A program made the translations under genes and the position numbers. Below the pieces are notes generated by a model. The model searched no databases, had not been told where the DNA came from, and was given only the letters and a program-made list of their open reading frames with translations. Positions 1 to 41,941 of a stretch of DNA of 41,941 bases are shown here, one piece after another (position 1 is the stretch's first letter; every line of letters starts with the position of its first letter). Origin of the DNA: Guillardia theta CCMP2712 (lineage: Eukaryota > Protista > Cryptophyta); the NCBI RefSeq assembly GCF_000315625.1, contig NW_005434467.1, forward strand, positions 37,169 to 79,109, read 5' to 3'.

Positions 1-1658
1 TCTTCCCCACAAAGTCCTCGATCGTCAAGCTCATCGTGTTCGCGTTGATCTTCAGCTCCAGCACCTTCACCCGCCTCCCCTCTACCTCCCTGTACCGCGG
101 CGTCTTCACCACCTCCAGGTACGACAGCGGCGGATACAGCATCTCCCCCTCCCCCGGATACTGAGACACAAACGTCAAGCTCGCCCCCCGGTCGATCGCC
201 CCGCAGCTGATCTCGAACACGATCGACTCTCCCTCCTCCCCGGCGTACTGCATCGCCGTCCTGACGTCTGTCGTCGTGCTCAGCAGCCCGTACTCGACTC
301 CTCCGGACACCCCGAGCTTGTCCTCGTTGAGGAAGCTCTCCGGCAGCCTCATCCCCTTCAGCCCCCTCCACACCCGCAGCCCCTCCGGCAGAGGCGTGTG
401 ACGAGACAGCTTCACGACCCCGCTGACGATGCAGTGGATGGTCGTCGTGTACTTGTTGGGGACCTTGTTGGAGTCTCGGAGGAGCTCGTTGGGAGCTCGA
501 AGAACAGAGTTGTACTTGAAGTACATCGGCCCTGTCATAGCAAGCCTCTTGTCAGCCTTCTCACGCTCTCTTGCTCCTCTCTTCTCCCCCATGCTCCATC
601 TCCCTCTCTCGCTATCTCTCTCCCTTACCTGTGTAGAGCTGCAGCGCGATCAGCTCCGCCTCCTGTAGCCCCGCCTTGATCGCCGTGTCCAGCCCCTTCA
701 GCTCCTCCATCCCTCGGATCACCCGCGTCCCGTCCGACAGCCTCTGCCTCCTCTCCGGGTCTGTGACGTTGAGCCACTCCTCCTTGGCAGTCGTCGTGAT
801 GTTGTAGTTGCTCGTCGTGAACGCTTCCTCCGCGTCCTTGCCCTTGCAGTGCTCCTCCTCTATCGCCTTCATCAGCTCCGTCTGAGGTAGCCCGATCCGC
901 TCCATCAGCCCCCCGTAGTACTCCTCGATCTTCCCGTACACGGCCTCGCGTACCTCCGCAAACTTGCTGTTGTGCGACGTCGGACCGTCTCCTCCCGCCC
1001 GCCCTCCTGCCTCCGCCGGCCTCCTCAGCGCCTCCTCGAGCCTCCTTGCTATCGCCGTCTGCCATAAAGCCGATAGAGCGCTCTCCGTCATCCCCTGTAG
1101 CCCCGCAAGAGGACTCGCCGCGCTCCCGCCGGGGATGCACTCCGCCATGACTCGGAGGATGTTGAGGTCGCCGAGGCTGCTGGCCTTGCGCTCGAGCTCC
1201 CACTCTCTTGCGACTCTGACCTCGTAGTCGTCGTACGAGAGCTTGTCAGGGCTGAGGGCTGACGCGTCGACGCCGAGAGCCATGCGGAGGTTGTTGAGAA
1301 TCGTTTTGTAATCCTCGGAGTCTCGAGGGGTCTGAAAGAGCTTCTTGAGGTCAGAGCTGATGTCGTCGGGGATAGTCCAGCTGGTCGTTTGCTGGGCACT
1401 AGCTGGTGGATCAGCCGTGGGATGGCTGATTTGAGATTTGATCTCGATGTCTGTCTTGTTTGACGGCTGAGTCGTAGGGCTGGAGATGCTTGACGGGACT
1501 CCTTGAGGAGCTGGGGGATCTTTGACAGTCTGCTTTCTCAGCTCGGCCTCGAGCTCTGAGATCCTTCTTGTCGCTTCTTCCAACCTCTGCTTGAGTAGCG
1601 AGTCATCATGACCCTCCTCGGGTTTCACTTTGGACGAGAAGCAGGGGAAGCAACTCAT
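1..1658 (-). CDS. Mono-ADP-ribosyltransferase (ARTC / R-S-E class) domain protein; two exons (1658-629 and 531-<1), 3'-partial
   Basis: The ORF 612..1658 ends ...LQLYTG at a donor (ACAG|gtaag, intron begins at 628). Splicing to a cag acceptor at 532 continues in frame as GPMYFKYNSVLR...KYTTTIHCIVSGVVKL...LRVWRGLKG...VEYGLLSTTTD...AMQYA...FEISCGAIDRGA...SQYPGEGEMLYPPLSYLEV, open to base 1. The R (VWRG), STT and ExE motifs are the ARTC catalytic triad. Confidence 0.85.
532..628 (-). other. Spliceosomal GT-AG intron (97 nt) in the ART gene
   Basis: gtaagg donor, gctgac branch-point-like motif and cag acceptor. Removal restores the YTGPMY motif in frame. Confidence 0.85.
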
Positions 1659-3079
1659 GTCCCTTTCTCAGCCCAGGGAGAAACCTGGTACAGGAGCTTG
1701 CATCAGCCGGCTTCAGATATCCTCTGTCCTCCACCACTCTCTCCCTCCCTCGTTTCACGTCTCTCTGTCTTGGATCTTCCTCTGTTTGTGGTTCGGTTTA
1801 CACCACAACGATCGGATTACAGAGCAGCTCAGCTTGTGTTGTACACCTGAGGCTTTCTGTCTATACACTCTGATCCTACTGCCTGCAACTGCAACACCAA
1901 GAGCGTATCAGTCGCCTGCTCTTTCAGAGCTTATCAAGTATTCACCTCAACAAGTGCCGTCTATTCTTGATCATAAGACCTATCACTCATTCTGACTTCC
2001 CCTCTCTTGCTCACTTATCCATGCAGGTCTTATTCTCTTTCGAAGTTCTGCCCTGCTTCCGACTCTGCCTCCTTCTCCCCCGCCGTCTCCTTTCTCCCTT
2101 TCAATGACTGTTCGTAGAGAGAGAGGAAAAACGACAGCGAGGGAAGAAAAGACAAGGAGAAAGAAAGAAATAAGACGATCAAGAGAGAAAGCTTCACTAT
2201 CCTTTCTTGACAAAGAAAGAGAGGGACCAAGACCGCCGAAAAAAATTATCAAGCACAGTGAAGGTTTCCTCTCTCCTCNNNNNNNNNNNNNNNNNNNNNN
2301 NNNNNNNNNNNNNNNNNNNNNNNNNNNNNNNNNNNNNNNNNNNNNNNNNNNNNNNNNNNNNNNNNNNNNNNNNNNNNNNNNNNNNNNNNNNNNNNNNNNN
2401 NNNNNNNNNNNNNNNNNNNNNNNNNNNNNNNNNNNNNNNNNNNNNNNNNNNNNNNNNNNNNNNCCTCCCGCTCTCCCCCTTCATCCTCCTGCCATATTTC
2501 CCGCCCAACCACCCCTCTACATGGAGCCCTACCCTAGTCGTATACCACCCTGTATAATCCCATGGTTTCAGCCTATCAGGTACGGGTGAGCAACACCAGC
2601 CTACCCTACCTGTTGATGTATTTTGCACTGCCCTACCCCACCCCCAGAAGCCCCAGGTTTCCGCTAGTCATCGTAAGGGGTGGACGCGCTAATTGGAGCA
2701 ACGGATCCGAGGCGGACTGCTGCTAGGCTGATCGGACCGTACGGTAAAAGACAACGTGACTCAGTGACGGTCACCGGGCCCGGGGTACAGTGACTGCGGC
2801 TGACTGTGCGGGCCCTGACTCAGCGGCCCTGGATCCCGACGAATGAAATGGAAGCCCAGGATGATCCGAGCGATGGCTCACGGGTGCCGAGTCGAAGCCT
2901 TCTCGCTGGGGGCCCGGAGCCTGAGCCTTGAAGCCCAGGATGATCGCTCTTAACGGGCTTGCGACTCGGATGAGCCGCACGGGCCGCGCCGGGCCCTCGA
3001 TCAAGAGGCTTCTGCTGACCTGACGCCCGGCCTGCGGAAGGCATCAAGGTCAAGACACGCGGCAGCTCTCAGTCTGAGC

Positions 3080-3624
3080 GAGGCTGCGAGAGCAGAGCTC
3101 CAGCTGGAGCACAGCAGCATCAAGCGAGCATCAGTGAGCGCAGAGGCATCAGAGCCTTGACTTGGACTCCAGCTCCCCTCAAGCCGCTCAAGCACCACGA
3201 GCACTGTAGAGGAGCTTGGAGGCTAGCTTCCTTCTCCTCTCATGCCCCTCCGTCCTCCCGCTCCCTCCCTCCCCTCCCTCCCTCCCTCTCCTCACCGCAC
3301 ACACTCCCCTCCCCTCCTCCTGCTGTTCCTCCTCCTCTCTCCTCCATCGCTCCTGCCGCTGTTGCCTCTGCCCCTCCTCCCCGTCGACCTTGTCCGTCAG
3401 AGCTCTGAGAGCGTCAGCTACTCTTCATCCGCGACCTCCGTCACCGCCGATTTCCATGTCAGCTCTCTCCCTCTCCTCGCATCTTTCTCTCCCTCATCAG
3501 ACCTCCCAGCAGCACCCCAGCACAAGTCCTGGCTACCTCTCCAGCTGCTGGGCACATGCCTCTGTCTCGCTCCTCTTTCTCACACCCTACCTCATGCTTG
3601 GATGGGTTGGAACCCCTCGCATGC
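3080..3624. repeat. Dispersed repeat family A (non-coding, CT-rich)
   Basis: 3148-3624 aligns with ~35998-36395, and 3080-3185 aligns with ~29444-29560. All share cagagccttgacttggactc. Confidence 0.8.
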
Positions 3625-3683
3625 CCACTATCATATCTTTTGAATGACAGAGAAAGAAAAGGCAAACTGGAGCAAACATGCAA

Positions 3684-4874: not shown

Positions 4875-4927
4875 ATGGCTGTTGGGCAGCAGGTTGTTGA
4901 CGTTGCTTGCAAGGTTATGATGATGGA

Positions 4928-4964
<37 letters not shown>

Positions 4965-7900
4965 ATGATGATGGAGATGATGATGATGATGGAGATGATG
5001 ATGATGGAGATGATGATGATGAAGGTAACTCCCCAGTAAAGGCGTGTGTAACTGTTCGACAGGTGGTGGTGTTGATTCTCCTACTCATGAGCACGGCTTC
5101 TCTCGCCGCTGTGTCCACTCTACATGGGATGAAGTACACAGTCGCTGAGACGGCTCAGCTGCACATGGAAGGAGGCATCACCGATCTGAAAGCGACCGAC
5201 ATGAAGATCTATTGGGGTTCTCTGGGAGCTTGGAGTGAAGGGAATGACATCCTGACATCCGACTCTGTCATCGAAGTCTACCTCCCGCGGTTTTCAGGTG
5301 GATCGAACCTGTTCGGTGCATACCGGTCTGGCGGTGCCGAAACGAATGTCCAGTGGATGAAGCAGAGTCAAGTCGTTACCATATCTGAAAGCCTATCCAA
5401 GACGTGGGCAACCGTTCCATCTCCTGTTTCCAACCAAGCCGCATCCGGAAACGGTCCTGGGGCCGGGGGATGCTTCGGAATAACACAAGACCTCTCGTCC
5501 AACGCGTTCGATCTCAAGCAGATACGTGCAGATTCCTTCTCCATGTGCCACTGGGACTCACAGAAAGAGACGCTCCGTCTGCTGGTGTCTTCGTCGCGTC
5601 GCATCACCGGTGTATACATCAGCAAGGTGTCGCTCTTTCAGAACTATGACGCTCATGGCAAGCAGAACGGTCTCGGTCCCTTGCCACCGATAGGAGGGAT
5701 TGACGAGCAGTGGTATCAGTTGGCGCATGTTGCCATCTATCAAGCCTCTGGCTCTCTGAGAGGCTGCGCCGTCAGCTCTATCAGCGACTTCCCGTCGACG
5801 TCATGCGCGAGCGATCTCCTGGTGTATCAAGTTCCCTTCGATCAGTATCGATCTGTCAGGTTTGGGACGGACCTTCCTCCAATCCCCACACGAAAGGGAG
5901 CTGGAGGCGTCGGCACAGTAGCGCCTCCATCCTTCGTCTATGCCGCAGCGTCTGGAAACAACGATGGGCCGAATCAAGCCGTGTGTATCACCGTCACGTT
6001 AGTCAGCTCCTCCACCATCTACTCCGTCGCTGCCAACCCGACCATGATCTCCCTGACTGGCCTGACGGGAAGCTTGTCGCCAAGTCAGTACATTCCGCTT
6101 TTCCAGAGCAAGTGTCAGTGCGAGGGGTCGAGCACAGCACAGGAGCTCATGCCTCCGAGGTTTCGAACCTCCACAAGCACGCAGGCTGTTGGTCAGGCAG
6201 AGTTCCATGCCGAGGGGACCTTGACGCTGCAGCTTATTCCGGGTCAGTACATTCAAGCGGGAGAGGTCGTGACTTTCTCCTTCAGTTTGAATACTGGTGG
6301 GAACCCCCAGACCTCCCGGGACTTGAGAGTTTCATTGTCGGGTCAAAGCTGTTCGACGAACGACTTCTGCACGTCATCCAGCTCTGTATCGGTTACGATC
6401 CCTCCTAGGAAGTTTGACTCCTCTTCCAAGATCTTGGAGGTAGTTGGCAACAAGTTGAGAGTGTCCATGTTTCAGAGCTCCAGCGATCCTGGCTCTATGA
6501 CCAATGTCTTTGTAACCTTGCAACCCAACTTCAACGTTGAGGTTGGGTCGGTGATAAGCTTTCAAGGAGTCTGCGGCACACAAACGAACACTGCTTACGT
6601 AGCTCTGATGAGCAACAGGCTAAATGGTGGAACCCCGTTGACTGACAAGTGCACTGGAAACCCCAAGGAAGTCGACCTGGCAGACTACTGGCCCAGTACA
6701 AGGCTAGATTGGAGCATAGGAGGGCCTCTAAAATTGACTCTAGAGCACAGCCTCGGCCTCAATGCTCGAGGGACCTATGCCCTGTCCTGGTCATGGCAAA
6801 ATGTCAACACGGCAAATTCGGCCTGCTCCCTAACGGTGACTGTGCACAAGGGAGGAAACGTCGTGAACGCTGAAGTAGTGGAGAACATCGGGAGTACGGT
6901 TGGCAACGTGGCTCCTCCTGGCTTCATCAAGTACAAGATAGGACAGACTACCACTCGCCCGGATACGACCAACTATATCTGTGTCACGCTCAGAAGCAAC
7001 TTTCGAATCTCAACGCAGCCCATCTCACAAGGTCAGAACACTCTGGCTCAGATTACAATGTCAGGTCTGCATGGCTCCCAGACAGGCAAATCGCCAATCA
7101 TCAGCGCATGTCCGACCTTCGACTGGAACTTGTTCCAGCTGCGTCCTGTGGCTGATCCTCCAACTGCGCATTTCGTGGACAAGGTCGTAGGAGGGACGCT
7201 GCATCGGACCACAAGCTGGGCTTCGGGATCAGCTGTGTTGACTGTCAATCAGGATGATAAGGCTGGCAATGCTTACTTCTCCATCCCCCAGCAGCAGGAT
7301 GTTGTGTTTGCGCTAGTCCTGAAGAACCCAAAGGGTCCCAACCCCTGCCAGTCAGTGTCCCTGAGCCTCTCAGCTCATGGACCAGGAAACACTCCGGTTA
7401 CGCAGACCGTTACAATGGTTCAAAACCCTCTTGATAGAGCCTTGGAGGATGGAGAGGTCGATGGGGATGTCTGTGTTCTCAAGACTTACGACTACAACTT
7501 CCCGACGAGAGTCATCGCGCAGTCGTCGCCTGTCGTACAGGAGAGCAACGTCATCACCATCACTCTGCGGTCTAACATGAACATGTTGAGTAGCTTCTAC
7601 GGCTCTCAGATCACCATCTCTGGTCTGCAGGGTACAGACACTACGGGCACAAGCTTGTTGGCGACTGCGGTTTCAGACCAATACTTCCCGAACATTCAGA
7701 AGACAAGTTGGGATGCCAGTCAAGGCAAGCTAGTAGTCTATCTCGCCCAAGGGACCTGTCAGCTACCTGTCAAAGGCCAGCCCTCTTACTGTATCTATGC
7801 GGGCTGGACCTATGTATGGCGTTACACCTTCAAGAATGGAGCCGCAGAGCAAGCAAGCCCGGCTGTGTCCATCTCATCTCAGTTTGCTCAAGGGAGGATT

Positions 7901-10900
7901 ACCAACCCACAAGTCATGACTTCGCCGATGAGCTCCGACTTTCATGTCCTCTACATGACCAGAAACCTTCTCAACAAGTACAACATCGGACAGTTGAATC
8001 CTGCTCCTGGAGCTGTCAATCCTGTTTGCATCACCTTGAGAGCAAGCAAGACGATCACTGCCCCTACCACCTTCACCCTCACAGGGTTAAACATGTTCTC
8101 CTCCAGCACCAACGTTGCCTTGTACGACGAGTACGCGACTGCCCCGCTTGCCGGGGGGTTGTTCCAGACGGTCGGAGCAAACCCGCAGAGCAACTACGCG
8201 ACGTACGATCAATCAACGATCCGGTTCCAGCTGGGTCCATCGCAGTCTCTTCAAGAGAGTGTAAAGTACAAGTTTTGCTTCAGGCTCACTAACGCCGTCA
8301 CGGGTCATGCCACCTGTCCTCAGGTCTCGTTGATCGTCGATTCGCATTCTGCACCAGCGGCGTTCAAGGGGTCGCAGGCGTATCTGTGCAACAACGAGGC
8401 GAGCAGGAGGGTCACAGGCTACCCCTCCGAGCCCTCAGGGTGCGCTGGTTACGTCTCAGATCGCAAGTTCGTATCGTCAACCCTCCGGTCAGGGTCAAAC
8501 GTGACTGCAAGTACTGCGTGGCTGACGATGGAGCTACAGCCCAACTATCCTCTCACCCCTGGCCACACAATCACCGTTGGCTCGTTCCTGAGCATGAAGA
8601 ACGCGGGGTCGTCGGACGTGCCATGTACGATAGTTCGCAATGGCCAGGTGGTCAACTCTGTCACCAATCAGCACAGTAACAAGGGAATCTTTGCTGCTGC
8701 TACGTTCGAGAGTGTTTGCAAGTTCATCGACAACCAGATCAAGATTTCTTACACGGGGGGCCAAGGCTCGTCCTCCAGTCTGGTCTACGACCCATATTAC
8801 GACGTGACTGCTCGCCGATCGAGGGGTCTGTACAAGGTGGAGGTGATGGCCGGGGGCTCTCAGTATGGAGCTGCCAGCGTCATCATCTGTGACATCACGC
8901 CTGGCGAAGAGTTCTGGACCAAGACGACCTGCACAGATGCTGGAGTAGTGTTTGCTGCTGGCAGCTCAGCCAGGGCACAAGCGACCGTCTTGTCTGGCAC
9001 TGTTGTCTCCATCAATCTCACGGCGTCGGGATCAGGCTACGCTGTCGCTCCCCGCGTGTTCATAGTCGACCCTACAGGGTCAGGCAGGGGTGCTCTAGCA
9101 AGAGCCTTTGTATACGACTTGTCCATCTACACGGTGCAGCTTCAGCTTGTCAATCAGAACACTCCTGCCCCTGCTGGAAGCTTCACGGTCTCGTCTCAGT
9201 CGTTTGTACCTGCCGCTTTAGACAGCGGGGATGGAGCTCTATCCAAGTCAAGCTTGAAGCTTCATGATCACAATAGCTCTCAGGTTGTCTTCACTGTCAC
9301 TCCCCAACACAACCTCTACGAGGGTGACATGCTCCTCGTCAACCTGCCGGCATATGACGTCATCACTGGGCCGATCTTTGGAGTTACCTCCTCCCCCAAC
9401 CCAGCCTTTACGACCTTCTCGACCCAGCTGGAGTGGGAGCTGAACTACCACGAGAAAGATCGGGCTCGAGCTTACGTCAGCAACGGCTGGGTAGCGGATG
9501 GCAACAGGCATCGCTCGGGAGACGGAGACGTTGACGGCTTGTTCGTGCTGTCGCCAGAGGATGATGGCTACAACAAGAACAAGGACCTGTGCTGGAGCCG
9601 AGTCTCCTGCCCTTGGGGCTTCCCGGACAGCGACATCACCTTCTCGAACCCATCCAGCACTTTGTCACTAGTCAAGGTACAGAGTACTTCTTCGTTTCTG
9701 GGCCACTCGCACGACATCTGTTACAAGAACAGCAGCTTCAACCTGCCCCATCCGTCAGACTACGTCGGTATGCAGCTCAAGTGCCGCAACAACCAGCACC
9801 AGGCGACCGACGGAGGTCAAGTCACCAGCGTGCGAGTGCGACATGGCGGGCTGACGGCCGTCAGCGGGAGGTACACAGAGACTTCAAGCATCTCCGCTGC
9901 AGCACCGACGTTTGTGGCAGCAGCAGCTGGTGCAACCAGTCAAGCTACCGGGTCGCTGATGTACCAGGTGGTTGGAGTTCAGTACATGTCAGGCAGCTCC
10001 TTGACAGATGGTGACGTCATTGTGTTTGACTCGACCTACCAAGTGTCGCCTGCCGCTGCCTCTGTCTCGTCCCTCTACAGCACCAGCCCAGCTGTGCATG
10101 TCGCGTCTCCCGGCTTGTACTCAGGCTTCCCGTACGCGACAGTCACTGGCAAGGACACGCAACTTCAAGTGCTGCTGAGCGTATCGAGCGCCAGCCTGTC
10201 CTCTCAAGGCAGCGGATACACTTCCATCCCAACCGTTACAACCTCCCTCAAGCCAAGTGTTGCTCTGCCTTCCGAAGTCCAGCAGCTGGAGCTTCCCGTG
10301 TTTGACGTGACGGTGACAAATGCTACCGGCACTGTCATCACCCAGTCTATCCTCGACTACAACCCAGCTAGACAATGCTTCGTGGTGGCGGAAGAGTTTC
10401 CGACTTCCTTCTTGAGCGACTGTCAGGTCGTGCCCAAGGAGCAGGTCGGTCGGTACACCGGCATGACAGCGATGATCGGGTCCAACGAGTACGTCATCAA
10501 GCAGGGAGCAGGTGGCGTCTACTGGGTGGCAGACCTCAAGGGCAACAAGCCCCGGAGCGTCGACCTGGCCAACAAGCCCTACACCATCTACACGCAGCTG
10601 CAGCTGCAGGTGGCGAAGGGCAAGTGGATCCGACAGGGCGAGAGCGTCAGCATCAGCATCCCCGGCTACCGGTTCAAGTCGGTCCCTAGCAACCCCAACG
10701 CGTTCGTCACTCCCTCTACGGATGACGCCTCCAAGACCATCCGAGAGAGGACGAGGTTTCAGTTCGCGACGCCCATCAGCGTTGGCAACGTTGGTATGGC
10801 AGGAGCGACGACGGCAAGGATGCTGATGTTTGGTGGGGCCATCTCAAGCAGCGACACCTGTACCATCCCGGGGAGCGACATAGAGGCCCCTCAGACCTCC

Positions 10901-21838: not shown

Positions 21839-21846
21839 AGACGGGC

Positions 21847-27168: not shown

Positions 27169-27195
27169 GCCTCCACTCCCACCCCTGTCCTCATA

Positions 27196-30142: not shown

Positions 30143-32116
30143 TTACACAACCATGGTTTTAAAGGTGGATGCCAAATTCAATAGCGCCCTGCACGCCTGC
30201 TCATGTAAAGCTTCACTCGACTGATACGCCTTCATCGCACCCATGATAGCCTCCATGCCCCCGAGGTCAGCCAGCATCGCTGCGTTGTCCGCATTGACAG
30301 CCAGGTTTGCGAGCGCCCAGCACGCGTACTGCTGTACAACCTCGCTAGTCGGATGGACCTTCATCGCTCGCATAATAGCCTCCATGCCTCCTAGCACAGC
30401 AATCTTGACTGCAATATCGGCACTCTCAGCCAGGTTCGCCAGCGCCCCCAACGCCTGCTCCTGTACGCCTTGACTGTATCGATGTGCCTTCATCGCCCCC
30501 AAGATAGTCTCCAGGCCCCCTAGCCCAGCCAGCTTTGCTGCGTTGTCCGCGTTGACAGCCAGGTTTGCAAGCGCCACACATGCTTGCTCCTGAACAACAC
30601 CGCTTGCAGGATGCGCCTTCATCGCCCTCATGACAGTCTCCATGCCTCCTAGCACAGCCAGCTTTGCTGCATTGTCTTCGTTCATTGAAAGGTTCGCCAG
30701 CGCCCCCAACGCCTGCTCCTGTACGCCTTCGCTGGTTTGATGCGCCTTCATGGCGCCTATGACAGTCTCCATGCCACCTAGCCTAGCCAGCTTGACTTTG
30801 TTGTCGTCGTCTTCAGCAAGGTTCTCCAGCGCCACACATGCCTGCTGCTGTAAAGCCTCGCTCGCAAGATGTACCTTCATCGCAAGTATGATAGCTTCGA
30901 TGCCACCTTTTGCTGCTATAATAGTTCGATTTTTCTTGTTGCTTTCTGCGTAGATTCCAAGCCTAATACATGTCTGGTGCTGTACCTCCATGCAATTGAT
31001 ATTCTTCTCCATCGTCCTCATGATCAAGGTTATTTCTTGTTCCGTAGTTTGGCTCTTACTTGCAAATTGGTTCATTGCCTTCAAACTATTTACCATCTCC
31101 TGTGTAGTCTGTGCTTGTTCAAGTTGACTCATTAACAATGAGTGGTCTGATTTAGATTGGTGCTTTTTCGGGGGGGATTTTGCCGTTGGTGCAAGATTGC
31201 CTGTAGCATCGAATGCAATCTTCATCTTCTTGACCGTTGGTCTATCATTTCCTGGTAGATGGTTGTTGATACTCTCCCGTCCCTTCCATGTGATCAGGTG
31301 ACTTGACACACGAGCCAGCAGATGGCTCTCCGGAACACGTGCATTGCGTGACATTGCCCGAACATTCTCATGTAGAGTGTAGTTGCGCCCCATCCAGTAG
31401 TAGAGGTGCCTCGAAAAGTCGATCGTGTCCTCATAAGCTACTGCTGTTTCGTGTCCGATCACAAAGTCCACATGCTTGATCAGTTCCTTTGCTACGGTGC
31501 TCGAGTAAGAGAGGTTCAGCACCACCAGCCGAAGCTTCGTACAATTCTTGACCATCAGACTCAGAGAAATGCTGAGCTGCTCAGCCGTGATGCTCACGCC
31601 TCCTATGGTGATGTTGCCTTCCTTAGAGCCATGGCAGGTGAGATGCAAAATGACCGGATCAGTCAAATTGACCATGCGGGTGATGGCGGACATGTTTCTG
31701 AAGCAGCTGTACTCGAAGCTCACGCTCTTAGCAAACTTGATCAAGGCAGCATCTCCCGTCTCGTGAGATCCTTTTATGAAACGATGTCTCATCAAGTCCC
31801 TATCCTTCTCGAGTCTCAAGTCGCTTTGCTCGTCCGCATCTACGAGCAACAACACCTTATAGGGAGCTGAGTCGCACGGAAAGAGAGCCTTCTGTCCTTC
31901 CTCTTGCCCTGCTTCTTCTCCTGCTTTTTCCTTTATGCGATTGCAGCATACGCATATCTGTCTCAACTTATCACCTTTAAGTTCGATATCTACAACTTCG
32001 ATATTGCTTACTGCCTCCTCGTGGAGTCCCGTTGAGCAACGCACGTAGGGCTCGAAGGCTACAAAACCGCTTCCGCCTGTTTCGTGCCTTCTCGTGTCCC
32101 AGACTGACTGAACGAT
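30143..32116 (-). CDS. Inactive CHAT-like domain + ARM repeats; probably the 3' exon of the CHAT-helicase gene
   Basis: PVILHLTCHG...LRLVVLNLSYS...VDFVIGHETAV...IDFSRHLY is a CHAT fold with the catalytic Cys replaced by Ser. About 6-7 43-aa ARM repeats of the form GGMETV..AMKAH....VQEQAC.AL.NLA. The frame is open up to an acceptor at 32117. Confidence 0.8.
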   Translation of the reverse strand: MVQSVWDTRRHETGGSGFVAFEPYVRCSTGLHEEAVSNIEVVDIELKGDKLRQICVCCNRIKEKAGEEAGQEEGQKALFPCDSAPYKVLLLVDADEQSDLRLEKDRDLMRHRFIKGSHETGDAALIKFAKSVSFEYSCFRNMSAITRMVNLTDPVILHLTCHGSKEGNITIGGVSITAEQLSISLSLMVKNCTKLRLVVLNLSYSSTVAKELIKHVDFVIGHETAVAYEDTIDFSRHLYYWMGRNYTLHENVRAMSRNARVPESHLLARVSSHLITWKGRESINNHLPGNDRPTVKKMKIAFDATGNLAPTAKSPPKKHQSKSDHSLLMSQLEQAQTTQEMVNSLKAMNQFASKSQTTEQEITLIMRTMEKNINCMEVQHQTCIRLGIYAESNKKNRTIIAAKGGIEAIILAMKVHLASEALQQQACVALENLAEDDDNKVKLARLGGMETVIGAMKAHQTSEGVQEQALGALANLSMNEDNAAKLAVLGGMETVMRAMKAHPASGVVQEQACVALANLAVNADNAAKLAGLGGLETILGAMKAHRYSQGVQEQALGALANLAESADIAVKIAVLGGMEAIMRAMKVHPTSEVVQQYACWALANLAVNADNAAMLADLGGMEAIMGAMKAYQSSEALHEQACRALLNLASTFKTMVV

Positions 32117-32148
32117 CTGTAGCAGAGCTTAGTGATCTCAAGATTCTT

Positions 32149-35100
32149 TCAACTGTCTGCACGATAGAGAACGATAGAAGAGTTGTACGTCACCTGTTGT
32201 ACAGGTCTAGTCTTTTCCGCTGCTTGCGCACCTGGAGAGATGTGAAAAGCAACAGAACCTGAAAAATCAAGGAGAAGAGTAAGAATGCAGAGCTCATGAA
32301 ACAATGAGACTGTGCTACCTGGATCATCTTGATTGCTGGAAGTCGGGAACGATGATGATAAACTTTGAGTGCGATGGGGTACTTGTGTCTTCATCATATG
32401 ATTCGCCCTCAGCCTCCTTTTTTTCCTCCCTCCCTCGTCGTTCTGTTTTGGTAAACTCTTTTCTCGCTCCATTTGTTCAATATGATCACAAAGAGTCTTG
32501 TTGATTTTCTTCTTCTCCTCTTCCACATCAAACTTGTCTTCAAACTCTATCCCATCCAGGAAAGACAATATCCCCTCTTTGACCCGATGATTCACTATCA
32601 TCACCATTCCTTCCTTCAGCGTCCGGGTGATCGCCCGGTACAACAGCGAACGATGCATGTTGAGGTCCCTGTCCTGCTCTTCCATATCAAGACCCACTGC
32701 AATCACTATCTTGCTCTCCATCCCGTCAAAGTTTGCGACAGTGTCAAACACGATCTTCTCCTTGCATTGTTCATGCTTGCTGGTTTGAGTAGCCTTCCAT
32801 GCATCAACAGCCGCAACGAGTGAGAACCTTGACTGGAAGTCTTCATCTTGGTTCAGATGGTTTTGCAGTACTTGTCTCAAGCCCTGATTGATAAGCTTCT
32901 CATGTGCAAGAATCGCGATATTCCAGTCTAGGTCTCCAGAAAACTCTGCTATCACATCTTTCATCGCTTGCAGTATGTGAGGAATGTACTCGCTTGCTAG
33001 TTCAACTTCCGAAGTAAACGCAAAGATATAAGGCTTGACTGGACGACCATCAACCTTGTGAGGGCACGAGACTTCATCTTTTGAGATACCTCTATGAAAC
33101 AACAACGAAGCAGTCATCGTCCTGTTGCTGTTTCTGACAACTTCTGTAAGGTATACGTCTTGAAGATCCTGAGGGTAAGCGATGTTTGTGACATCAGCTT
33201 GCGAGGTGTCAGACATCAGCAGCATTGTGGACATGTCGTACTGCTTCTTCCTGATAAAGTCCGTTGCTTCCTCATCGCAGAACACATGATGCGCTTCGTC
33301 AATCACTACATACTTGTACTCCAACTCGTCCTTACTCTGCATCTCAACCTTCTCCTGTTTCTTCCGTAGACAACCATCATCCTTCTCCGTTATCAAGAAA
33401 GGACCATCCCATCCTGTCTCCCCGCGGAAGGAAAAGAAGATCCGATCAAACAGCCCTGCATCCACCAGCTTCCACTTCATCATCGAGGAGACCCAGTGCG
33501 CGATGAAGAACACAAACGCTTCAGAGCGCAGCATGAACAAAATCGAGCAGATCCTGTCCTTTTCCAGCTCTCTTAGCATCATATGCAGCGCCATGAAAGT
33601 CTTGCCTGTCCCTGCTGGGCCTTGCAGGTGAATTCCCCTCCTACCCTCCATCGCTTCCTCGCACTCCCTCGCTTTCTCCTGCTGATGAGCGGTCAATATG
33701 CTCCTTCCTTCCTCCTCCAGTAGCTTCTCAACTCGCCTCGCCGGCCTCATATAAAGAAGAAAGCGACTAGGCAGACGAGCGAGAATGCGGAGATTTGATC
33801 GAATCTGACGAAGTTTCTGACCACCGATCTTCTGCAAAGCAAAGGCCTTCGATGTGCTTGAGATGAACAAGCAGAACCCATGAAAGAGGCAGGTCATGCT
33901 TGAAGCAGATTTGTTCTGCTTCTTCGCCTCTGCCGTCTTCTGTCTCTTGTAGATGTCGAGGTACTCGAACAGGATAAGAGAAGTGATCTTATCCATTATC
34001 ATGTAACAAACGTTGCTTGGAGTCTCAATCAAGCTAGTGACGATTTGGATGGACTCAACCCTTGACCATAGAAACCTGTTCATTCTCTCCAAGATCTGGC
34101 CAGCACGCTCATTGTTCTTCTCCCAATCTTTCATTACATGCCCAATCCATGCTCGTTTGCAAGATTCGGTGTCCGGAAGACAAGCGCTCACAATCCTGTC
34201 CGTTAAGAAGATAATGGACGCGTACTTCTTCTTCCAGCCCCAAGCATCAAACTCCGCTCTATCCCAATACTTGCATGTCACATCTCGATGCCTAAATATG
34301 TCTTCTAGCACTTCCAAAAGCTCATTTTGTGATGCAGACTCAGAGATGCATTTGTCCAACTTTTCCCTGCTTTCCTCATGCAATCTGGCATCCCTCATCA
34401 CCTTCAACCACAACAACATGCACATCGTCCATGGTTGAGCTTCTTTTCCATCATTCTCAGTGTGCATATGCTTGCTGTCGTTGACAGAGATCGTATGATT
34501 CTCAGAAAAATTTCGGAAGTCTCGCAGAAGCTGAGTAATGTGCGTCTCCAAGTCACCTTTTTCTCTCTCATTTCTCGCAACGACTAGCTCAATCTGACCA
34601 TGTTCGTCTGCAGGGTCGCTTGCAACATTCGTGTTTGATTGAATCAATGCATCAGTTTCTGCCAATCCACTCTCATCGGCTGTGGGAGAACAGAGTCGAG
34701 CTGTGCGTTCCGACATCTCCCTCACCTTTACGCCGACGACACACCAGAACTCCTTCTTGCGATGTGAACTCAGCTGCTCTGTCAGCTCTTCCACAGACTT
34801 GTCAGTCTTGTCTTGAAAATCTTCTAATGCCCAGTCTTGAACCCTCAAACTCTGACAATGACTCACTGGACATCCTAGCCGGAAAGCTGAGGCATCGCAT
34901 CGACCATACAGCCTGTATCCTCGAGAGCAGCCTCTCGCTCCCATCATTGCTTCAAGCAAGGACTTTCCATGGAATAGCATACTGTAGAAAATATCTGAAA
35001 ACTCAATAGCATCATCGTCGTTCAGCCCGTCTTTGTGCCCAATCGCGAAGTCAACGACCTCCGTCAGCTTCTTCGCATGCTCATCAGACGAGCATGCGTT

Positions 35101-35502
35101 GAGCACCACTAGCTGCACCTGCGCTGCTCCTGATCTCTTCGAAATCTCGTTGTGAGCCTTGAGAGCATCGGCCATTGTTTCAACATCGACATTGCGTCTG
35201 AAAAGCTTGATCGCCTCTGTTTCGGCATGGCAGCTGAAGTGAAGAATCAGAGGCTTTCGGGTCCGGACCTCCTTGACAACCTCTCCCCATGCACAGGAAT
35301 ACGGACGGGAGAGATTATTAGCATCTATGGTGCAGATGATGGATTGGATCCGGTTGTACTCTTGTTTGAGGTTCAAACAAGGATCGTTTGGGCTGGTAGT
35401 GATGTCTACAGGGACGAAATGAAGCCGATGTGGAACTTGTGGCGTGTCAGGCTTGACTAAGCTGGGCCAGTCGATATCATCGTCTCGAGACTTCGTCGTC
35501 AT
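32149..35502 (-). CDS. CHAT (caspase-like CD-clan) protease + SF1 (UvrD/Schlafen-type) helicase protein; probably spliced onto 30143-32116
   Basis: CHAT His/Cys motifs: LNLKQEYNRI, ILHFSCHA, VVLNACSS, AIEFSDIFY. Helicase motifs: LTAHQQ, GPAGTGKT (Walker A), VVIDEAHH (Walker B), SDTSQ, LTEVVRNS, FDGMESKIV, LYRAITR. Confidence 0.88.
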   Translation of the reverse strand: MTTKSRDDDIDWPSLVKPDTPQVPHRLHFVPVDITTSPNDPCLNLKQEYNRIQSIICTIDANNLSRPYSCAWGEVVKEVRTRKPLILHFSCHAETEAIKLFRRNVDVETMADALKAHNEISKRSGAAQVQLVVLNACSSDEHAKKLTEVVDFAIGHKDGLNDDDAIEFSDIFYSMLFHGKSLLEAMMGARGCSRGYRLYGRCDASAFRLGCPVSHCQSLRVQDWALEDFQDKTDKSVEELTEQLSSHRKKEFWCVVGVKVREMSERTARLCSPTADESGLAETDALIQSNTNVASDPADEHGQIELVVARNEREKGDLETHITQLLRDFRNFSENHTISVNDSKHMHTENDGKEAQPWTMCMLLWLKVMRDARLHEESREKLDKCISESASQNELLEVLEDIFRHRDVTCKYWDRAEFDAWGWKKKYASIIFLTDRIVSACLPDTESCKRAWIGHVMKDWEKNNERAGQILERMNRFLWSRVESIQIVTSLIETPSNVCYMIMDKITSLILFEYLDIYKRQKTAEAKKQNKSASSMTCLFHGFCLFISSTSKAFALQKIGGQKLRQIRSNLRILARLPSRFLLYMRPARRVEKLLEEEGRSILTAHQQEKARECEEAMEGRRGIHLQGPAGTGKTFMALHMMLRELEKDRICSILFMLRSEAFVFFIAHWVSSMMKWKLVDAGLFDRIFFSFRGETGWDGPFLITEKDDGCLRKKQEKVEMQSKDELEYKYVVIDEAHHVFCDEEATDFIRKKQYDMSTMLLMSDTSQADVTNIAYPQDLQDVYLTEVVRNSNRTMTASLLFHRGISKDEVSCPHKVDGRPVKPYIFAFTSEVELASEYIPHILQAMKDVIAEFSGDLDWNIAILAHEKLINQGLRQVLQNHLNQDEDFQSRFSLVAAVDAWKATQTSKHEQCKEKIVFDTVANFDGMESKIVIAVGLDMEEQDRDLNMHRSLLYRAITRTLKEGMVMIVNHRVKEGILSFLDGIEFEDKFDVEEEKKKINKTLCDHIEQMEREKSLPKQNDEGGRKKRRLRANHMMKTQVPHRTQSLSSSFPTSSNQDDPGSTVSLFHELCILTLLLDFSGSVAFHISPGAQAAEKTRPVQQVTYNSSIVLYRADS

Positions 35503-37124: not shown

Positions 37125-40100
37125 TCACTCGGCATCGCGTCGCTCGAGCACGGACCTGAGCCGTCGGCCCGCCTCAGAAGCACGGGTGTCGGGGATGTTG
37201 GGAGGCAGGGCGGCGCCTCGGAGCCGTCGGATGCGTCGGATGTTGTACGAGTTGTCGCTAGCAAGGCTGCTCAGAGCCTCCATNNNNNNNNNNNNNNNNN
37301 NNNNNNNNNNNNNNNNNNNNNNNNNNNNNNNNNNNNNNNNNNNNNNNNNNNNNNNNNNNNNNNNNNNNNNNNNNNNNNNNNNNNNNCCCTCCGTCATGCT
37401 GCGCAAGGCCTTGCATCCGTCACGCTGTATCCATCGGTCGCCTGCGTGCGTGGACATGGCGCTGACGACGGCCTCGATCGCTCCTGCCTCCCGCGCTCGC
37501 GCCTGGCTGTCTGCCATGCCCGCCGTCATGCTGCGCAAGGCCTTTGCATCCGTCACGCTGTATCCATCGGTCGCCTGCGTGCGTGGACATGGCGCTGACG
37601 ACGGCCTCGATCGCTCCCGCCTCCCGCGCCCGCGCCTGGCTGTCAGCCATGCCCTCCGTCATGCTGCGCAAGGCCTTGCATCCGTCACGCTGTATCCATC
37701 GGTCGCCTGCGTGCGTGGACATGGCGCTGACGACGGCCTCGATCGCTCCCGCCTCCCGCGCCCGCGCCTGGCTGTCTGCCATGCCCTCCGTCATGCTTTG
37801 AAGTGCTTTGCATGCTGACCATTGCATGTAACTCTCGTCCGGGTGTCTGGACATGGCGCTGACGACGGCCTCGATCGCTCCCGCCTCTCGTGCTCGCGCC
37901 TGGCTCTCTTTGATGTGACTCACTGTGTTTGTCACGGCCCTGCACGCAGTCTTCTGTACCCACCTGTCGTCCGTGTGCCTGGACATCGCCCTCACTACCG
38001 CCTCGATCGCTCCCGCCTCCCGCGCCCGCGCCTGGCTGTCTGCCATGCCCTCCGTCATGCTTACAAGTGCTTCGCAGGAAGATCCTTGTACCCCAGCGTC
38101 TTCCGCGTGCGTGGACATGGCGCTGACGACGGCCTCGATCGCTCCCGCCTGCATGGCCGGGAGCTTGTTCTGCTCGTGGCTCTCGGCTATCGCTGTCAGC
38201 ACCTCGCATAGACCTTGCTGTATCTTCGCGTTGCTCTGGTGCCTGGTCATGGCGCTGACGACGGCCTCGATCGCTTTCGCATCTCTCGCTGTGCCCTGGT
38301 ATCGGAAGTACTGCATTGTGTACTTCAGGGCCTCACACGCAGCCTGCTGTACTTGCCAGTCGTTCGCGTAACTTGACATGGCGCTGACGACGGCCTCGAT
38401 CGCTCCCGCCTCTCGTGCTCGCACCTGGCTCTCATCGCTGAAGCTGACAGTGTAGTCCAGGGCCCAGCACGCAGCCTGCTGTACCCCCGCGTCGTTCGCG
38501 TGCGTGGTCATGGCGCTGACGACGGCCTCGATCGCTCCCGCCTCCCGCGCCCGCGCCTGGCTCTCGTCCCTGAAGCTGACAGTGTTCTTCAGAGCCTCGC
38601 ACGCAGCCTGCTGTACCCCCACGTCGTCTGCGTGCGTGGTCATGGCGCTGACGACGGCCTCGATCGCTCCCGCCTCTCGAGCCCGCGACTGGCTCTCTTG
38701 GATGCGACTGACAGTATGTGTCAGGGCCCAGCACGCAGCCTGCTGTACCCCCGCGTCGTCTGCATGCGTGGTCATGGCGCTGACGACGGCCTCGATCGCT
38801 CCCGCCTCTCGCGCCTTGAGCTTGTCAGCCTCCCCGTTCTGAGCCATGCTGACCAAGGCTTCGCACGCAGCCTGCTGTACCTCCGCGAGAGCCTCGTACG
38901 TCCTCATCTCCTGCATCACCACCTCTATGCTGTCGTCAGCTCCCGTCCTCAGCAGCCTCCATGCCTCCCTTGCCGGCTGCTCCGTCCCGCTTCCGTCTTG
39001 TGCCCCTACCGCTGCCGACGCCCCGACTGGCAGTGCCTGAGCTCCCGTCCTCAGCGAGCTGAGAGCGTCGCTGCCCGTGGACTCCAAGGCGGTGCAAGCT
39101 GACTCTTGCAGCTCCACGAGCTCTGCGTACTTGCGCTTCCTGACTCTCCTCGCCACCGCCTCGATCCCTCCCCCCGCTGCCTCTCCGATCCTTCTCCATG
39201 CAGCTTCTGCCATGCTGCGTATGCCTCGGCATAGCGACTGGTTGCCGGCCTCTGCCCGCTGCTGTCCAGGCGTCCTGTCTGACCATGTCCATGCAGTAGC
39301 CCCCTCACCCCCCTCCGCTCCGGCTCTTCCTACAGCTACCGCAAGCTCGGCGAACCTCGGGCGGTCCTCCTCCCTCGTCGCCCAGCAGCTCTCCAGCAGG
39401 GCCCACAACCCGTCCGGGCATCTTCCGAGGAGGTGCTCTCGAGGAAGCCTCCCACCCCCGCACACGTACCCGATCACAGTCGGGTCCGTCATGGGGTAGT
39501 AGGGGGTCATGCCCGAGGTCAAGATCTCCCAGCACGTGACCCCGTAGGCCCACACGTCGCTCTTCTCCGAGCACCGGGCCTCTCTGCATCGACTCTGGGG
39601 GGCATGTACCGCACCGGCAGCGCTCGCCCCGCTACCCTCCCGTCACTCCCGTCCACCAGCTCCCCTGCCCGGCCCGTACCCCGGCCACCTTCACCGNNNN
39701 NNNNNNNNNNNNNNNNNNNNNNNNNNNNNNNNNNNNNNNNNNNNNNNNNNNNNNNNNNNNNNNNNNNNNNNNNNNNNNNNNNNNNNNNNNNNNNNNNNNN
39801 NNNNNNNNNNNNNNNNNNNNNNNNNNNNNNNNNNNNNNNNNNNNNNNNNNNNNNNNNNNNNNNNNNNNNNNNNNNNNNNNNNNCAGCTGGGGGAGCTCGG
39901 TCAGCAGCAGGGGACAGCAGTCGTCGTCGTGGCTCTGCCCCATGTAGCGTACAAGAAGAGGGATGCGGCCCGAGCATGAGCATGACCGCGGCTTGTCTGC
40001 CGCCGTCGTCTAGCGTGAGCTTGAGCACGGCTACCTTGATCTTGCCGGGCCCTGCTCTCCTTCCTTGCACGCGGAGGTGACCTATGTAGAGGGTCTGGGA

Positions 40101-40388
40101 GGAGCCTGCTGTGATAGGCTGCCCCTCCATCTCCACGTCGTGCCTGGGGACGAGCAGCGCGTGTCGCTCCTGCCACTCCTGGATGGCGCTGCGGAGAGCG
40201 AGGTTGGGTACAAGGTGGTTAGAGGGGAGGAGGACGCCGGTGAGGGGGCTGGAGAGACGATGGCGGAGCCAGGTCTCGATGGAGGATCTCTGGTAGGTGT
40301 GGCCATCGCAGCAGGTGACAGGGTCGGTCATGAGCGCCATGCTGATGGGGCAGAAGAAGGACCGTAGCGCTCCCTGGTCCGCTGCCAT
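37125..40388 (-). CDS. U-box + tyrosine-kinase-like + armadillo-repeat protein, copy 2 (gapped; apparent frameshifts near contig ends)
   Basis: ATG at 40388 (MAADQGALRSFFCPISM...). Kinase C-lobe nearly identical to copy 1; at least 12 ARM repeats. Small indels near 39957, 39670, 39575-39600 and 37543 lie close to N gaps, so it could be intact (assembly errors) or a pseudogene. Confidence 0.8.
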
Positions 40389-40687
40389 GGCGGGGCAGAG
40401 GAGCGAGGGGAGGTGAAGGGAGGGGATAGGGGGGTACGTGCAGCGAGGGAGCGAGGGGGTGCGAGGCCGGTCTAGGGAGGGGTAGGGGGTGGTAGGAGGA
40501 GTGGAGAGGAGGGAGGAGGGGTGGTCCAAAAAAGAAATGGGAGTGTAAAACTAAAAAAAAGAAGGATATGTCTTGTTGCTGCCTTTTGTGTGCGATGGTA
40601 TCTTGCGGGTATGTGTTGTTGCTGCCTTTTGAGCATTTGGTACTGATGGTCTGAGGCGGATGGCTCCGTTATCAAGAGGAGGAGATC

Positions 40688-40947
40688 ATCTAGGGGGTGC
40701 CGAGAACTGAGTCATCTAGGGNNNNNNNNNNNNNNNNNNNNNNNNNNNNNNNNNNNNNNNNNNNNNNNNNNNNNNNNNNNNNNNNNNNNNNNNNNNNNNN
40801 NNNNNNNNNNNNNNNNNNNNNACCGAGAACTGTGTCATCTAGGGGGTGGGGGGTGGAATCCTACCGAGACTGTGTCATCTAGGGGGTGGGGGTGGAATCC
40901 TACCGAGACTGTGTCATCTAGGGGGTGGGGGTGGAATCCTACCGAGA
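40688..40947 (+). repeat. G-rich minisatellite, copy 2 (contains an assembly gap)
   Basis: Units of accgag(a)actgtgtcatctagggggtgggggtggaatcct. Confidence 0.8.
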
Positions 40948-40955
40948 AGACGGGC

Positions 40956-41941
40956 ATGTCGCTTGTTTCTTTTGTCGGCGGCCTCAAGCTGAGGAGCTCT
41001 TCTGGCCTGCTGCGCTTGTCGAGGTAGGCGATTGTGAAACATGGATGGGTGATCGGAGGTGAAGCCGGCGAGTAGAGGAGTGTGACGCAGCAGGAGTGAG
41101 GTGCCATAGATAGTGAGTCTGTGAGCGGAGGATCGGGAGGATTTCGCGGAGAGAGATTGAAGTGTCTGTTGCATGCTGACGGTTGCTTCTTTATGGTTTG
41201 CCAGTGCAATGAAGCATGAAGCAAGCAAGGCTTTCGAGGGACGTGCGGAGCGGAGAGCAAACGGCACGACAGGTAGAGGTCCGCAGTTGCCTGATCGTGA
41301 GAAACAAGACAATCAGAGTCGGTTTGCATGGAGTCATGACCGGTCACACACGAAGAAAAGGCAGGGAGATGTCGCAGGAAACGAGATCGAGATCGCGAGG
41401 GCATCCAAGTTAGTCGACCAGACAGCCAAAAGCTTGTCGTTGCGCAAGAGAGAGGCTGAGCTGAAGGAGGCTGAGGTCACAGGAGACGAGATCGAGATCG
41501 CAGACGCCCTCCTGAGAGTCAGGGAGGCAGAGCTGGAGGAGGCTGAGGTCACAGGAGACGAGATCGAGATCGCGAAGGCACGCAAGTTAGTCAACAAGGC
41601 ATGGCTAAGCTTGTCGTTGCGCAAGAGAGAGGCTGAGCTGGAGGAGGCTGAGGTCACAGGAGACGAGATCGAGATCCTCAAGGCACGAATCAGGGTCAGG
41701 GAGGCTGAGCTGGAGGAGGCTGAGGTCACAGGAGACGAGATCGAGATCCTCAAGGCACGAATCAGGGTCAGGGAGGCTGAGCTGGAGGAGGCTGAGGTCA
41801 CAGGAGACGAGATCGAGATCCTCAAGGCACGAATCAGGGTCAGGGAGGCAGAGCTGGAGGTGGCTGAGGTCACAGGAGACGAGATCGAGATCGCAGAGGC
41901 CCTTCTTGCCCTCAGGATGGCAGAGCTGGAGGAGGTTTGGC
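40956..41941 (+). CDS. Hypothetical coiled-coil tandem-repeat protein, copy 2 (3'-partial; exon 1 at 40956-41023, exon 2 from 41205)
   Basis: Open frame from ATG 41209 to the window end, with EAELEEAEVTGDEIEILKARIRVR present three times. Same splice sites as copy 1. Confidence 0.6.

Follow-up and report, generated by a model that had tools for sequence, protein, structure and literature searches.

Amplified genes joining enzyme domains to variable repeat arrays in the cryptophyte Guillardia theta

A stretch of 41,941 nucleotides (nt) from the genome of the cryptophyte alga Guillardia theta CCMP2712 carries genes in which cytosolic enzymes are joined to variable solenoids; these genes have been amplified, with their enzyme parts homogenised and their binding parts diversified. 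The stretch, here called the window, is G000:C207:37169-79109, where C207 is contig NW_005434467.1 of an 87.1 Mb genome assembled in 669 contigs. A preliminary description, made from the letters of the window, had presented it as a candidate innate-immunity locus of a protist, rightly taken to be an alga, with enzyme effectors paired with hypervariable repeat sensors. The pairing itself is borne out: the predicted components are an ADP-ribosyltransferase (ART)-ankyrin (ANK) protein, a U-box-pseudokinase scaffold-ARM protein and a CHAT-superfamily 1 (SF1) helicase-pseudo-CHAT-ARM protein, none with a signal peptide, and the modules are reshuffled in relatives, where the ART occurs with ANK, LRR, HEAT or WD40 and the helicase with kinase/LRR or ANK.

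Enzyme domains and the repeat arrays joined to them

The ART gene is cut by a 5.7-kb scaffold gap (C207:31455-37168) directly before the window start. Its open reading frame (ORF) at 612-1658 on the minus strand finishes ...LQLYTG and is followed by GTAAGG, and the next frame starts ...ACAG|GGCCGATGTAC; direct reading of the sequence across the junction gives YTGPMYFKYN, in agreement with the family consensus YTGPM. An AlphaFold2 model of exon 2 (predicted local distance difference test score, pLDDT, 83.9) was compared with the PDB by Foldseek, and the top 50 matches are all R-S-E ARTs (E ~2e-6, template modelling score, TM, 0.5-0.63), including HopU1, ExoS, C3, Tre1, CDTa, VIP2 and iota. Across an alignment of 48 homologs S87, E130 and E132 are invariant and R58 nearly so; the fold type is R-S-ExE and the catalytic motifs are kept in the paralogs. 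Fold, residues and motifs thus confirm the R-S-E ADP-ribosyltransferase of the preliminary description and refine it to an R-S-ExE enzyme whose gene has one 97-nt intron. Exon 2 alone, a fragment, scores 19.9 bits with PF01129 (cut-off 23.4) and 17.4 bits with PF03496 (cut-off 22.3); a Hanusia homolog (48% identical) passes PF01129 with 31.3 bits, and a protein language-model atlas scores exon 2 at 0.97 to eukaryotic ART clusters. The protein is a predicted Arg-type ADP-ribosyltransferase. C3, HopU1, ExoS, Tre1 and the vertebrate ecto-ARTs share its fold as well as its R, S-T-T and Q-x-P-x-E-x-E motifs. Unlike these, the Guillardia enzyme is intracellular and algal, lacks a signal peptide, bears a C-terminal ankyrin array and occurs at ~20 loci.

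The ankyrin array is placed by a gap-free paralog on contig C361, where the ART exon leads through a linker of ~230 amino acids (aa) into an array of 35-aa units within a single 692-aa ORF. Because this paralog carries both parts in one ORF, the gene is an ART-linker-ankyrin fusion. GUITHDRAFT_119904 (65% identity) and a Hanusia phi protein are built alike, as is a Hemiselmis protein with additional EF-hands; the Hanusia and Hemiselmis homologs are 46-65% identical. Among related ART domains, those of Emiliania huxleyi are joined to LRR and those of metagenomic proteins to HEAT, WD40 or LRR. Of the sampled ART-region words, 59-72% occur in transcriptome-like runs from seven studies, suggesting that some ART copy is expressed. 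The ART-ANK protein gave no match in IMG/VR.

Both of the expected U-box-kinase-ARM genes are present (18320-21175 and 37420-40529), but their kinase is a predicted pseudokinase. The U-box (PF04564), with 63 and 62 bits in copies 1 and 2 against a cut-off of 21.4, is a predicted E3 ligase domain. The kinase fold of copy 1 is clear (PK_Tyr_Ser-Thr, E 3e-48); its motifs are HRDLAARH, in which the loop Asn is replaced by His, GYG or GFG in place of DFG, and a degenerate Gly loop, and paralogs of ~76% identity show the same degenerate motifs. An exhaustive search returned dozens of 50%-identity clusters with U-box and kinase in one stretch; the C-termini of these relatives are ARM, ubiquitin-like or others, and one has an N-terminal WW domain. 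Because most relatives keep HRDLAxRN and DFG (23 of the 30 with a scorable HRD motif), the kinase of the window subfamily is a derived pseudokinase and presumably inactive. In copy 2 an apparent frameshift lies amid homopolymer indels and adjoins a gap (39697-39883) that takes out ~62 codons of the kinase domain, so that this copy cannot be called a pseudogene. The ARM arrays are built of 44-aa units, and their number varies between paralogs from 9 to 14.

In plant U-box-ARM proteins (PUB12/13, ARC1) the ARM repeats are the substrate-binding module, kinase-U-box classes also exist, and members act in immune-receptor turnover and self-incompatibility. The arrangement of N-terminal U-box and C-terminal ARM is common to these plant U-box (PUB) E3 ligases and the Guillardia gene, which differs in its tyrosine-kinase-like (TK-like) pseudokinase between the two. 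Database matches to plant PUBs (PUB13, PUB33) are restricted to the U-box, ~7% of the query, and the true relatives are protist U-box-TK-like kinases, mostly with active-type HRDLAxRN/DFG.

The third component is a single gene. Transcriptome contigs from three studies, placed on 30000-35680, reveal four introns; a 4,778-nt transcript contig bridges the helicase ORF and the ARM ORF, and the spliced coding sequence stays in frame. The CHAT-helicase and ARM ORFs are therefore one expressed gene, transcribed and spliced in ordinary cultures, and the CHAT-helicase-ARM gene of the preliminary description stands, with CHAT fold and dyad, SF1 helicase and ARM repeats together. Runs labelled as a second organism match the helicase-gene stretch of the window with zero differences. 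The model of residues 1-230 (pLDDT 76.8) has a caspase-hemoglobinase fold; its best match is SAVED-CHAT 8tl0 (E 4e-14, TM 0.71), then legumain, caspases and Csx29, and among 12 homologs H88 and C137 of the dyad are invariant and H92 nearly so. The CHAT family of Pfam (PF12770) stays below threshold (13.6 bits against 24, E 0.046), and the domain is a short divergent CHAT, its membership resting on fold and dyad. A second CHAT-like domain was found between helicase and ARM (hhalign 99.1%, E 1.6e-18). The CHAT fold and the His/Cys dyad are shared with SAVED-CHAT 8tl0 and with the CHAT/Csx29 of Craspase. Unlike the bacterial CHAT systems, the Guillardia gene has no SAVED or CRISPR partner, carries a second CHAT-like domain with Ser in place of Cys, and belongs to a eukaryotic nuclear genome, its four introns being spliceosomal.

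The helicase bears a Walker A GPAGTGKT, a Walker B VIDEAHH and, towards the C-terminus, a RecA2 domain; ResIII scores 34.2 bits against a cut-off of 22.5, UvrD_C_2 and SLFN-g3 (Schlafen-group-3) are sub-threshold, and relatives match PF09848. Only four full members of the family, plus fragments, are found in the genome (C207, C61, C59, C100); the paralogs include GUITHDRAFT_112475 and GUITHDRAFT_142158, and distant homologs carry kinase+LRR, ANK, LRR or FYVE/PH domains. In Hanusia phi the predicted protein P0115 (EukProt, 1,565 aa) joins CHAT and the first helicase half to ART-ANK, with 48% identity to window residues 8-793 and 48% to the C361 ART-ANK paralog. An isolated CHAT fragment (64% identity to window residues 84-185) at G000:C122:67415-67708, on another cluster contig, lies 1.5 kb from an ART copy, the only instance outside the window in which members of the CHAT and ART families are neighbours. 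Guillardia theta is a marine alga, and 65% of the sampled helicase-gene words are present in a freshwater metagenome run (X13); the signal could come from a close relative living in fresh water, from a feed organism or from contamination.

Amplified cassettes and the evolution of their parts

Paralogs were counted across the genome, as the preliminary description had proposed, and the ART and U-box families are indeed multi-copy and clustered. The ART region occurs at ~20 loci with 94-99% nt identity. Copies of the U-box/pseudokinase part number at least 17 and are 94-98% identical in aa; some are truncated or contain stop codons, further subfamilies stand at ~76% and ~50% identity, and many copies keep intact ORFs of 951-1,196 aa. 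The two families, each of ~18-20 loci, are spread over ~20 mostly small contigs and occur together, in the same order, on at least eight; an ART locus lies within 25 kb of ~11 of 18 U-box loci, co-locations that are not independent of one another, since the cassette duplicates as a unit. The recurring order, traced by tblastn on six contigs, is ANK(-) ART(-) ... U-box/ARM(-) coiled-coil(+), with two cassettes each on C207, C239, C300 and C294 and one each on C361 and C363. Both cassettes of C207 hold a gene for a giant surface protein between ART and U-box, and further genes of like design occupy the spacers on C239: one with a PARP domain, a kinase gene, WD40 arrays and a WD40-TK-like-kinase-RING gene. 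Two U-box/kinase copies (G000:C67:2484-3683 and G000:C337:13695-14894) are identical over 400 codons and may be one locus assembled twice, so that copy counts are approximate.

Is this pattern the product of one recent duplication? A recent segmental duplication had been noticed in the window, and 18242-22790 and 37047-41941 are indeed 94-100% identical outside the ARM arrays. The account is nevertheless too simple. Between the two C207 cassettes the ART is 94-95% identical in nt, the U-box/kinase part ~97% in aa (dS, the synonymous divergence, 0.02-0.06 in the ART and U-box parts; dN/dS, the ratio of non-synonymous to synonymous divergence, 0.2-0.8) and the coiled-coil gene 87% in nt, whereas the giant genes share 74% in nt and 59-75% in aa, with dS ~1-2 and a dN/dS (omega) of 0.1-0.25. 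Recent segmental duplication alone is insufficient because the giant gene, at that dS, stands beside near-identical neighbours. Gene conversion between cassettes may be keeping ART and U-box alike, or the two may have been recently replaced beside an old duplicate; either way, the contrast within the cassette points to concerted evolution, beyond one recent duplication.

The repeat arrays follow another course. Very high internal identity, claimed for them at the outset, applies to the ANK units of the window (mean 85% nt, 73% aa) but not to the ARM units of copy 1 (mean 70% nt, 57% aa). The predicted ankyrin array itself is present as ten 105-bp units at 23963-25132. Since neither an ART nor a linker lies upstream, the array either stands alone as a gene or is what remains of an ART-ANK gene after rearrangement.

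When 59 distinct ANK units from six contigs were compared in the unit frame G-x-T-C-A-H..., variation was concentrated, as foreseen, at a few positions (2, 7, 10, 11, 20, 33, 34 and 35). Of these, 2, 10, 11 and 33-35 are, we take it, the canonical ankyrin positions 5, 13, 14, 33, 2 and 3, the target-binding face of DARPins. On minimum-spanning-tree (MST) counts dN/dS is 1.26 at the hypervariable sites against 0.48 elsewhere (odds ratio 3.3, p = 8e-8), in a rough test that compares paralogous units rather than alleles and that recombination can mislead. After Bonferroni correction, seven sites (2, 7, 10, 28, 33, 34, 35), six of them where ankyrins usually contact ligands, carry 2-3.4 times as much non-synonymous change as the synonymous rate of the whole array predicts.

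In the ARM units positions 4-17 (AREAGAIEAVVSAM) are invariant, synonymous sites included, and variation lies in the helix-3 half of the unit. MST counts over 64 distinct units give a dN/dS of 0.46 overall, 0.15 at positions 4-17 and 0.55 at the ten most variable positions. These counts replaced an all-against-all comparison of per-site pN/pS (non-synonymous to synonymous polymorphism), which was set aside as mixing old repeat types. Per-codon analysis of the repeats, another check that had been proposed, thus yields an excess in ANK at seven sites and none above 1 in ARM.

Neighbouring genes and the state of the assembly

Between ART and the first U-box gene lies the giant surface-protein gene (Table 1), whose product has a predicted signal sequence, an S/T-rich ectodomain, one C-terminal transmembrane helix and a short tail. 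In the upstream paralog (C207:10547-23083), a continuous ORF of 4,179 aa, the tail measures ~50 aa. The 1-nt deletions of the window gene, scored against this paralog, are likely to be sequencing errors or very recent lesions, because the long downstream ORFs stay open. The protein gave no Pfam match, and in the atlas only unnamed eukaryotic clusters. A (GAT)n-type microsatellite at 4917-5024, just after the gaps at 4479-4578 and 4697-4851, gives the giant ORF an apparent poly-Asp N-terminus; the start and signal peptide suggested by the raw ORF are probably not the real ones, the paralog starting MLTCLQAILLLALSISCPAHA. Most cassettes on other contigs lack the giant gene, of which a single additional copy, a partial one on C151, was detected.

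Each U-box gene is separated from its divergent coiled-coil neighbour by G-rich tandem repeats of 26, 39 and 66 bp (TCTAGGGGGTGGGGGTGGAATCC...; 21614-21831 and 40822-40947), which may act as a bidirectional promoter element for both genes or may be prone to form G-quadruplexes. Further repeats in the window are a 178-nt intergenic direct repeat of 92% identity (3449-3626 and 36222-36399, 32.8 kb apart) and a 37-bp unit containing GTAAGT, present in six copies of 96% identity at 28368-28589.

Nine N-runs were counted in the window, three of them (37284-37386, 39697-39883 and 40722-40821) additional to the six first listed, and the window end is the contig end. For the gap at 2279-2463, paralogs on C294 and C239 hold real sequence of equal length; the flanks of 13831-13930 are collinear with the gap-free 4,179-aa paralog, which has ~14 codons between them; and 21371-21470, 36947-37046, 37284-37386 and 40722-40821 are noncoding. 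Most ART and U-box loci are found near the ends of contigs or on small contigs rich in gaps, and the reference assembly under-represents the cluster region. A subtelomeric location is not supported by a scan for the telomere repeat TTTAGGG, which was found at the ends of large scaffolds and on none of the six fetched cluster contigs, small contigs that may be incomplete.

Table 1. Features of the window, with paralogous-cluster genes on contig C239
Feature	Position	Strand	Description
ART exon 2	1..531	-	catalytic core: R (VWRG), S (LSTT), ExE (EGE); cut off by 5.7-kb gap at window start
ART intron	532..628	-	97 nt, GT-AG
ART exon 1	629..1658	-	Cys-rich N-terminus (MSCFPCF), coiled coil, helical region, no signal peptide
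Giant surface-protein gene	4907..17539	+	~4,200 aa; split by two 1-nt deletions (~11354, ~11399) and gap 13831-13930
U-box/pseudokinase/ARM copy 1	18320..21175	-	951 aa, intact ORF
U-box of copy 1	~20948-21148	-
TK-like pseudokinase of copy 1	~20132-20894	-
ARM array of copy 1	~18452-19756	-	eleven 44-aa units
Coiled-coil repeat gene copy 1	22154..22891	+	24-aa and 59-aa repeats; divergent from U-box gene across G-rich repeat spacer
Ankyrin ORF	23963..25132	+	389 aa; ten 35-aa (105-bp) units and C-cap
Ankyrin N-cap fragment and two units	26728..27168	+	placed after the array, though normally expected before it
CHAT-helicase-CHAT-like-ARM gene	29994..35502	-	one spliced gene, 1,756 aa
ARM repeats of helicase gene	~30158-30913	-
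Second CHAT-like domain	~31361-31786	-	catalytic Cys replaced by Ser
SF1 helicase	~32503-33705	-	GPAGTGKT and DEAH motifs
First CHAT protease domain	~34888-35430	-	followed by helical region
Introns of helicase gene	30105-30151; 31958-32011; 32117-32193; 32257-32316	-	GT-AG; from transcript contigs
U-box/pseudokinase/ARM copy 2	37420..40529	-	kinase domain broken by gap 39697-39883; eleven ARM units, order unlike copy 1
Coiled-coil repeat gene copy 2	41216..41941	+	cut off by contig end
N-gaps	2279-2463; 4479-4578; 4697-4851; 13831-13930; 21371-21470; 36947-37046; 37284-37386; 39697-39883; 40722-40821
Paralogous-cluster genes on C239	L025:8986-9999; L026:3-3481; L029:1466-4100	-	PARP, kinase, WD40, WD40-kinase-RING

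Possible roles of the enzyme-repeat genes

We propose that the window belongs to a multigene region that would be specific to Guillardia theta and evolving in concert, in which an enzyme or executioner domain is combined with a variable solenoid array that probably picks the target. The repeat arrays would bind diverse protein ligands, the attached enzyme would ADP-ribosylate, ubiquitinate or cleave the bound target or a downstream substrate, and unit shuffling together with gene conversion would keep the family diverse. By analogy, such an evolutionary regime is like that of families recognising non-self or pathogens, among them the fungal NLR repeats and E3 arrays of the TRIM-like kind. Because of this resemblance a conflict or recognition system, with an antiviral or antiparasitic role, is the likeliest reading of the cluster, tentatively though we hold it.

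TRIM-type restriction factors combine an E3 ligase with a rapidly varying binding module and lie in tandem multi-copy clusters subject to birth and death. An E3 with a varying module in amplified clusters with birth and death would, by analogy, describe the Guillardia genes as well; the domains themselves are unrelated (RING/B-box/SPRY as against U-box/ARM). With the fungal NLR repeats (HET-E/D, NWD family) the Guillardia system shares similar tandem ANK-type units, variation in unit number between family members, exchange between paralogs and variable residues on the predicted binding surface. Unlike fungal NLRs, the Guillardia genes have no NACHT or NB-ARC, and their repeats are attached directly to the ART or to the U-box-pseudokinase. 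A Pfam scan of the window ORFs found no TIR, NACHT or Death domain and no STAND domain at threshold (nSTAND3 E 0.021, P-loop only); the system is no NLR, though it may act as one does. NTPase-centred 'ternary' conflict systems made of effector, NTPase and superstructure-forming repeats were described by Kaur et al. 2020 (PMC7159879). The same grammar of effector, NTPase and repeat is found in the CHAT-helicase-ARM protein, where the NTPase is an SF1 (ResIII/UvrD_C, Schlafen-group-3-like) helicase as against the STAND or MoxR of those systems; SF1 helicases are unmentioned in PMC7159879.

A role in biotic conflict has to be set against several results that weigh the other way. The CHAT-helicase family is dispersed and lies outside the amplified cassette, so that the single gene cluster of the preliminary description holds for the ART/U-box cassette but not for this four-member family, whose adjacency may be incidental. 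Hanusia P0115 lacks the second helicase half and may be either a real (Rosetta-stone) fusion or a chimeric transcript contig, and PADLOC models gave only generic helicase, kinase and weak SAVED_CHAT matches. Selection is no less ambiguous: the ANK counts carry the caveats given above, no site of the ARM arrays is above neutral expectation and none has a dN/dS above 1 on MST counts, and a dN/dS of ~0.45-0.5 in the enzyme domains indicates moderate constraint. High-internal-conservation (HiC) repeats were defined by Dyrka et al. 2014 (PMC4986451) as having more than 85% aa identity between units over at least 100 aa; at 73% aa (ANK) and 57% aa (ARM) the window arrays fall below this, and some paralogous ANK arrays look closer to it by eye. 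The fungal survey covered WD, ANK and TPR repeats and no ARM (PMC4986451). Finally, the assembly of the cluster region is 3-16% N, which leaves copy counts and intactness uncertain.

Much of this would suit an ordinary lineage-specific expansion of signalling or regulatory proteins (E3 ligases, ARTs, scaffolds) that act on endogenous substrates, shaped by relaxed constraint and by unequal crossing-over in a region prone to recombination rather than by pathogens, an explanation that we find somewhat unlikely and still take seriously. It would account for a dN/dS below 1 almost everywhere (ARM 0.46; enzyme domains 0.45-0.5), for the constitutive expression of the helicase gene and for the want of TIR, NACHT and Death domains in the window, and among protists the U-box-kinase and ART-repeat architectures both form widespread families whose C-termini vary greatly in kind. 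It fits poorly with the non-synonymous excess at seven ankyrin positions, six of them on the canonical binding face, and with ~20 near-identical copies subject to birth and death, and homogenised enzyme parts beside an old diverged neighbour would be unusual for housekeeping regulators. The giant genes invite another thought, namely a complex for allorecognition, mating or kin recognition in which the giant type I surface proteins would be polymorphic and recognise and the linked cytosolic enzyme-repeat proteins signal or execute. A ~4,200-aa single-pass surface protein in both full C207 cassettes, its copies strongly diverged (59-75% aa identity), would suit such a role, and the fungal HiC repeats serve in allorecognition (PMC4986451). 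The giant paralogs are, however, under purifying selection (omega 0.1-0.25), and most cassettes on other contigs are without the gene, with only the partial copy on C151 in addition. We know of no sexual or fusion biology in G. theta, and regard this explanation as improbable.

Slightly less probable again is a largely non-functional or selfish amplification in a stretch given to segmental duplication and recombination, possibly mobile cargo or an assembly artefact, with many pseudogenes and drifting repeats. Copies on small gap-rich contigs and at contig ends, several of them truncated or with stops, the scrambled-order ankyrin relics of the window and the frameshifting deletions of the giant gene all look the part. 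Against it stand the long intact ORFs (951-1,196 aa in the U-box family, 4,179 aa in the giant paralog), the catalytic residues that have been kept, a dN/dS of ~0.5 rather than 1, Hanusia and Hemiselmis homologs that keep the architecture at 46-65% identity, and ART words in the transcriptome-like runs of seven studies. A viral or mobile origin was rejected as the main explanation, given that IMG/VR gave no match to ART-ANK, no transposase or reverse transcriptase domain was found in the scanned ORFs and the introns of the ART and helicase genes are spliceosomal.

Returning to biotic conflict, a bolder version would make of these genes an NLR-free immune or non-self arsenal of cryptophytes, consisting of restriction factors built from an enzyme and a hypervariable solenoid (ART-ANK and U-box-pseudokinase-ARM), their diversity maintained through concerted evolution, plus a helicase-centred analogue of NLRs; this we consider doubtful, and a literature search gave no paper tying the ART-repeat or CHAT-helicase genes, or their expansions, to immunity in Guillardia or E. 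huxleyi. If it were true, sensing of a ligand or nucleic acid by the CHAT-helicase-pseudo-CHAT-ARM protein would release a caspase-like protease, and the Hanusia fusion of CHAT-helicase and ART-ANK would mark parts of one pathway.

If the genes serve ordinary signalling, the value of the region would lie mainly in annotation (gene models, the pseudokinase call and the ART-ANK fusion). With near-identical enzymes beside an anciently diverged gene, it is also a clear protist example of concerted evolution. Hardly anything is known of the means by which unicellular algae outside the green lineage recognise viruses, parasites or non-self, and the region offers testable candidates for it: an ART-ankyrin family of ~20 loci, a parallel E3-ARM family and a protease-helicase that follows the domain grammar of immune receptors with a different NTPase.

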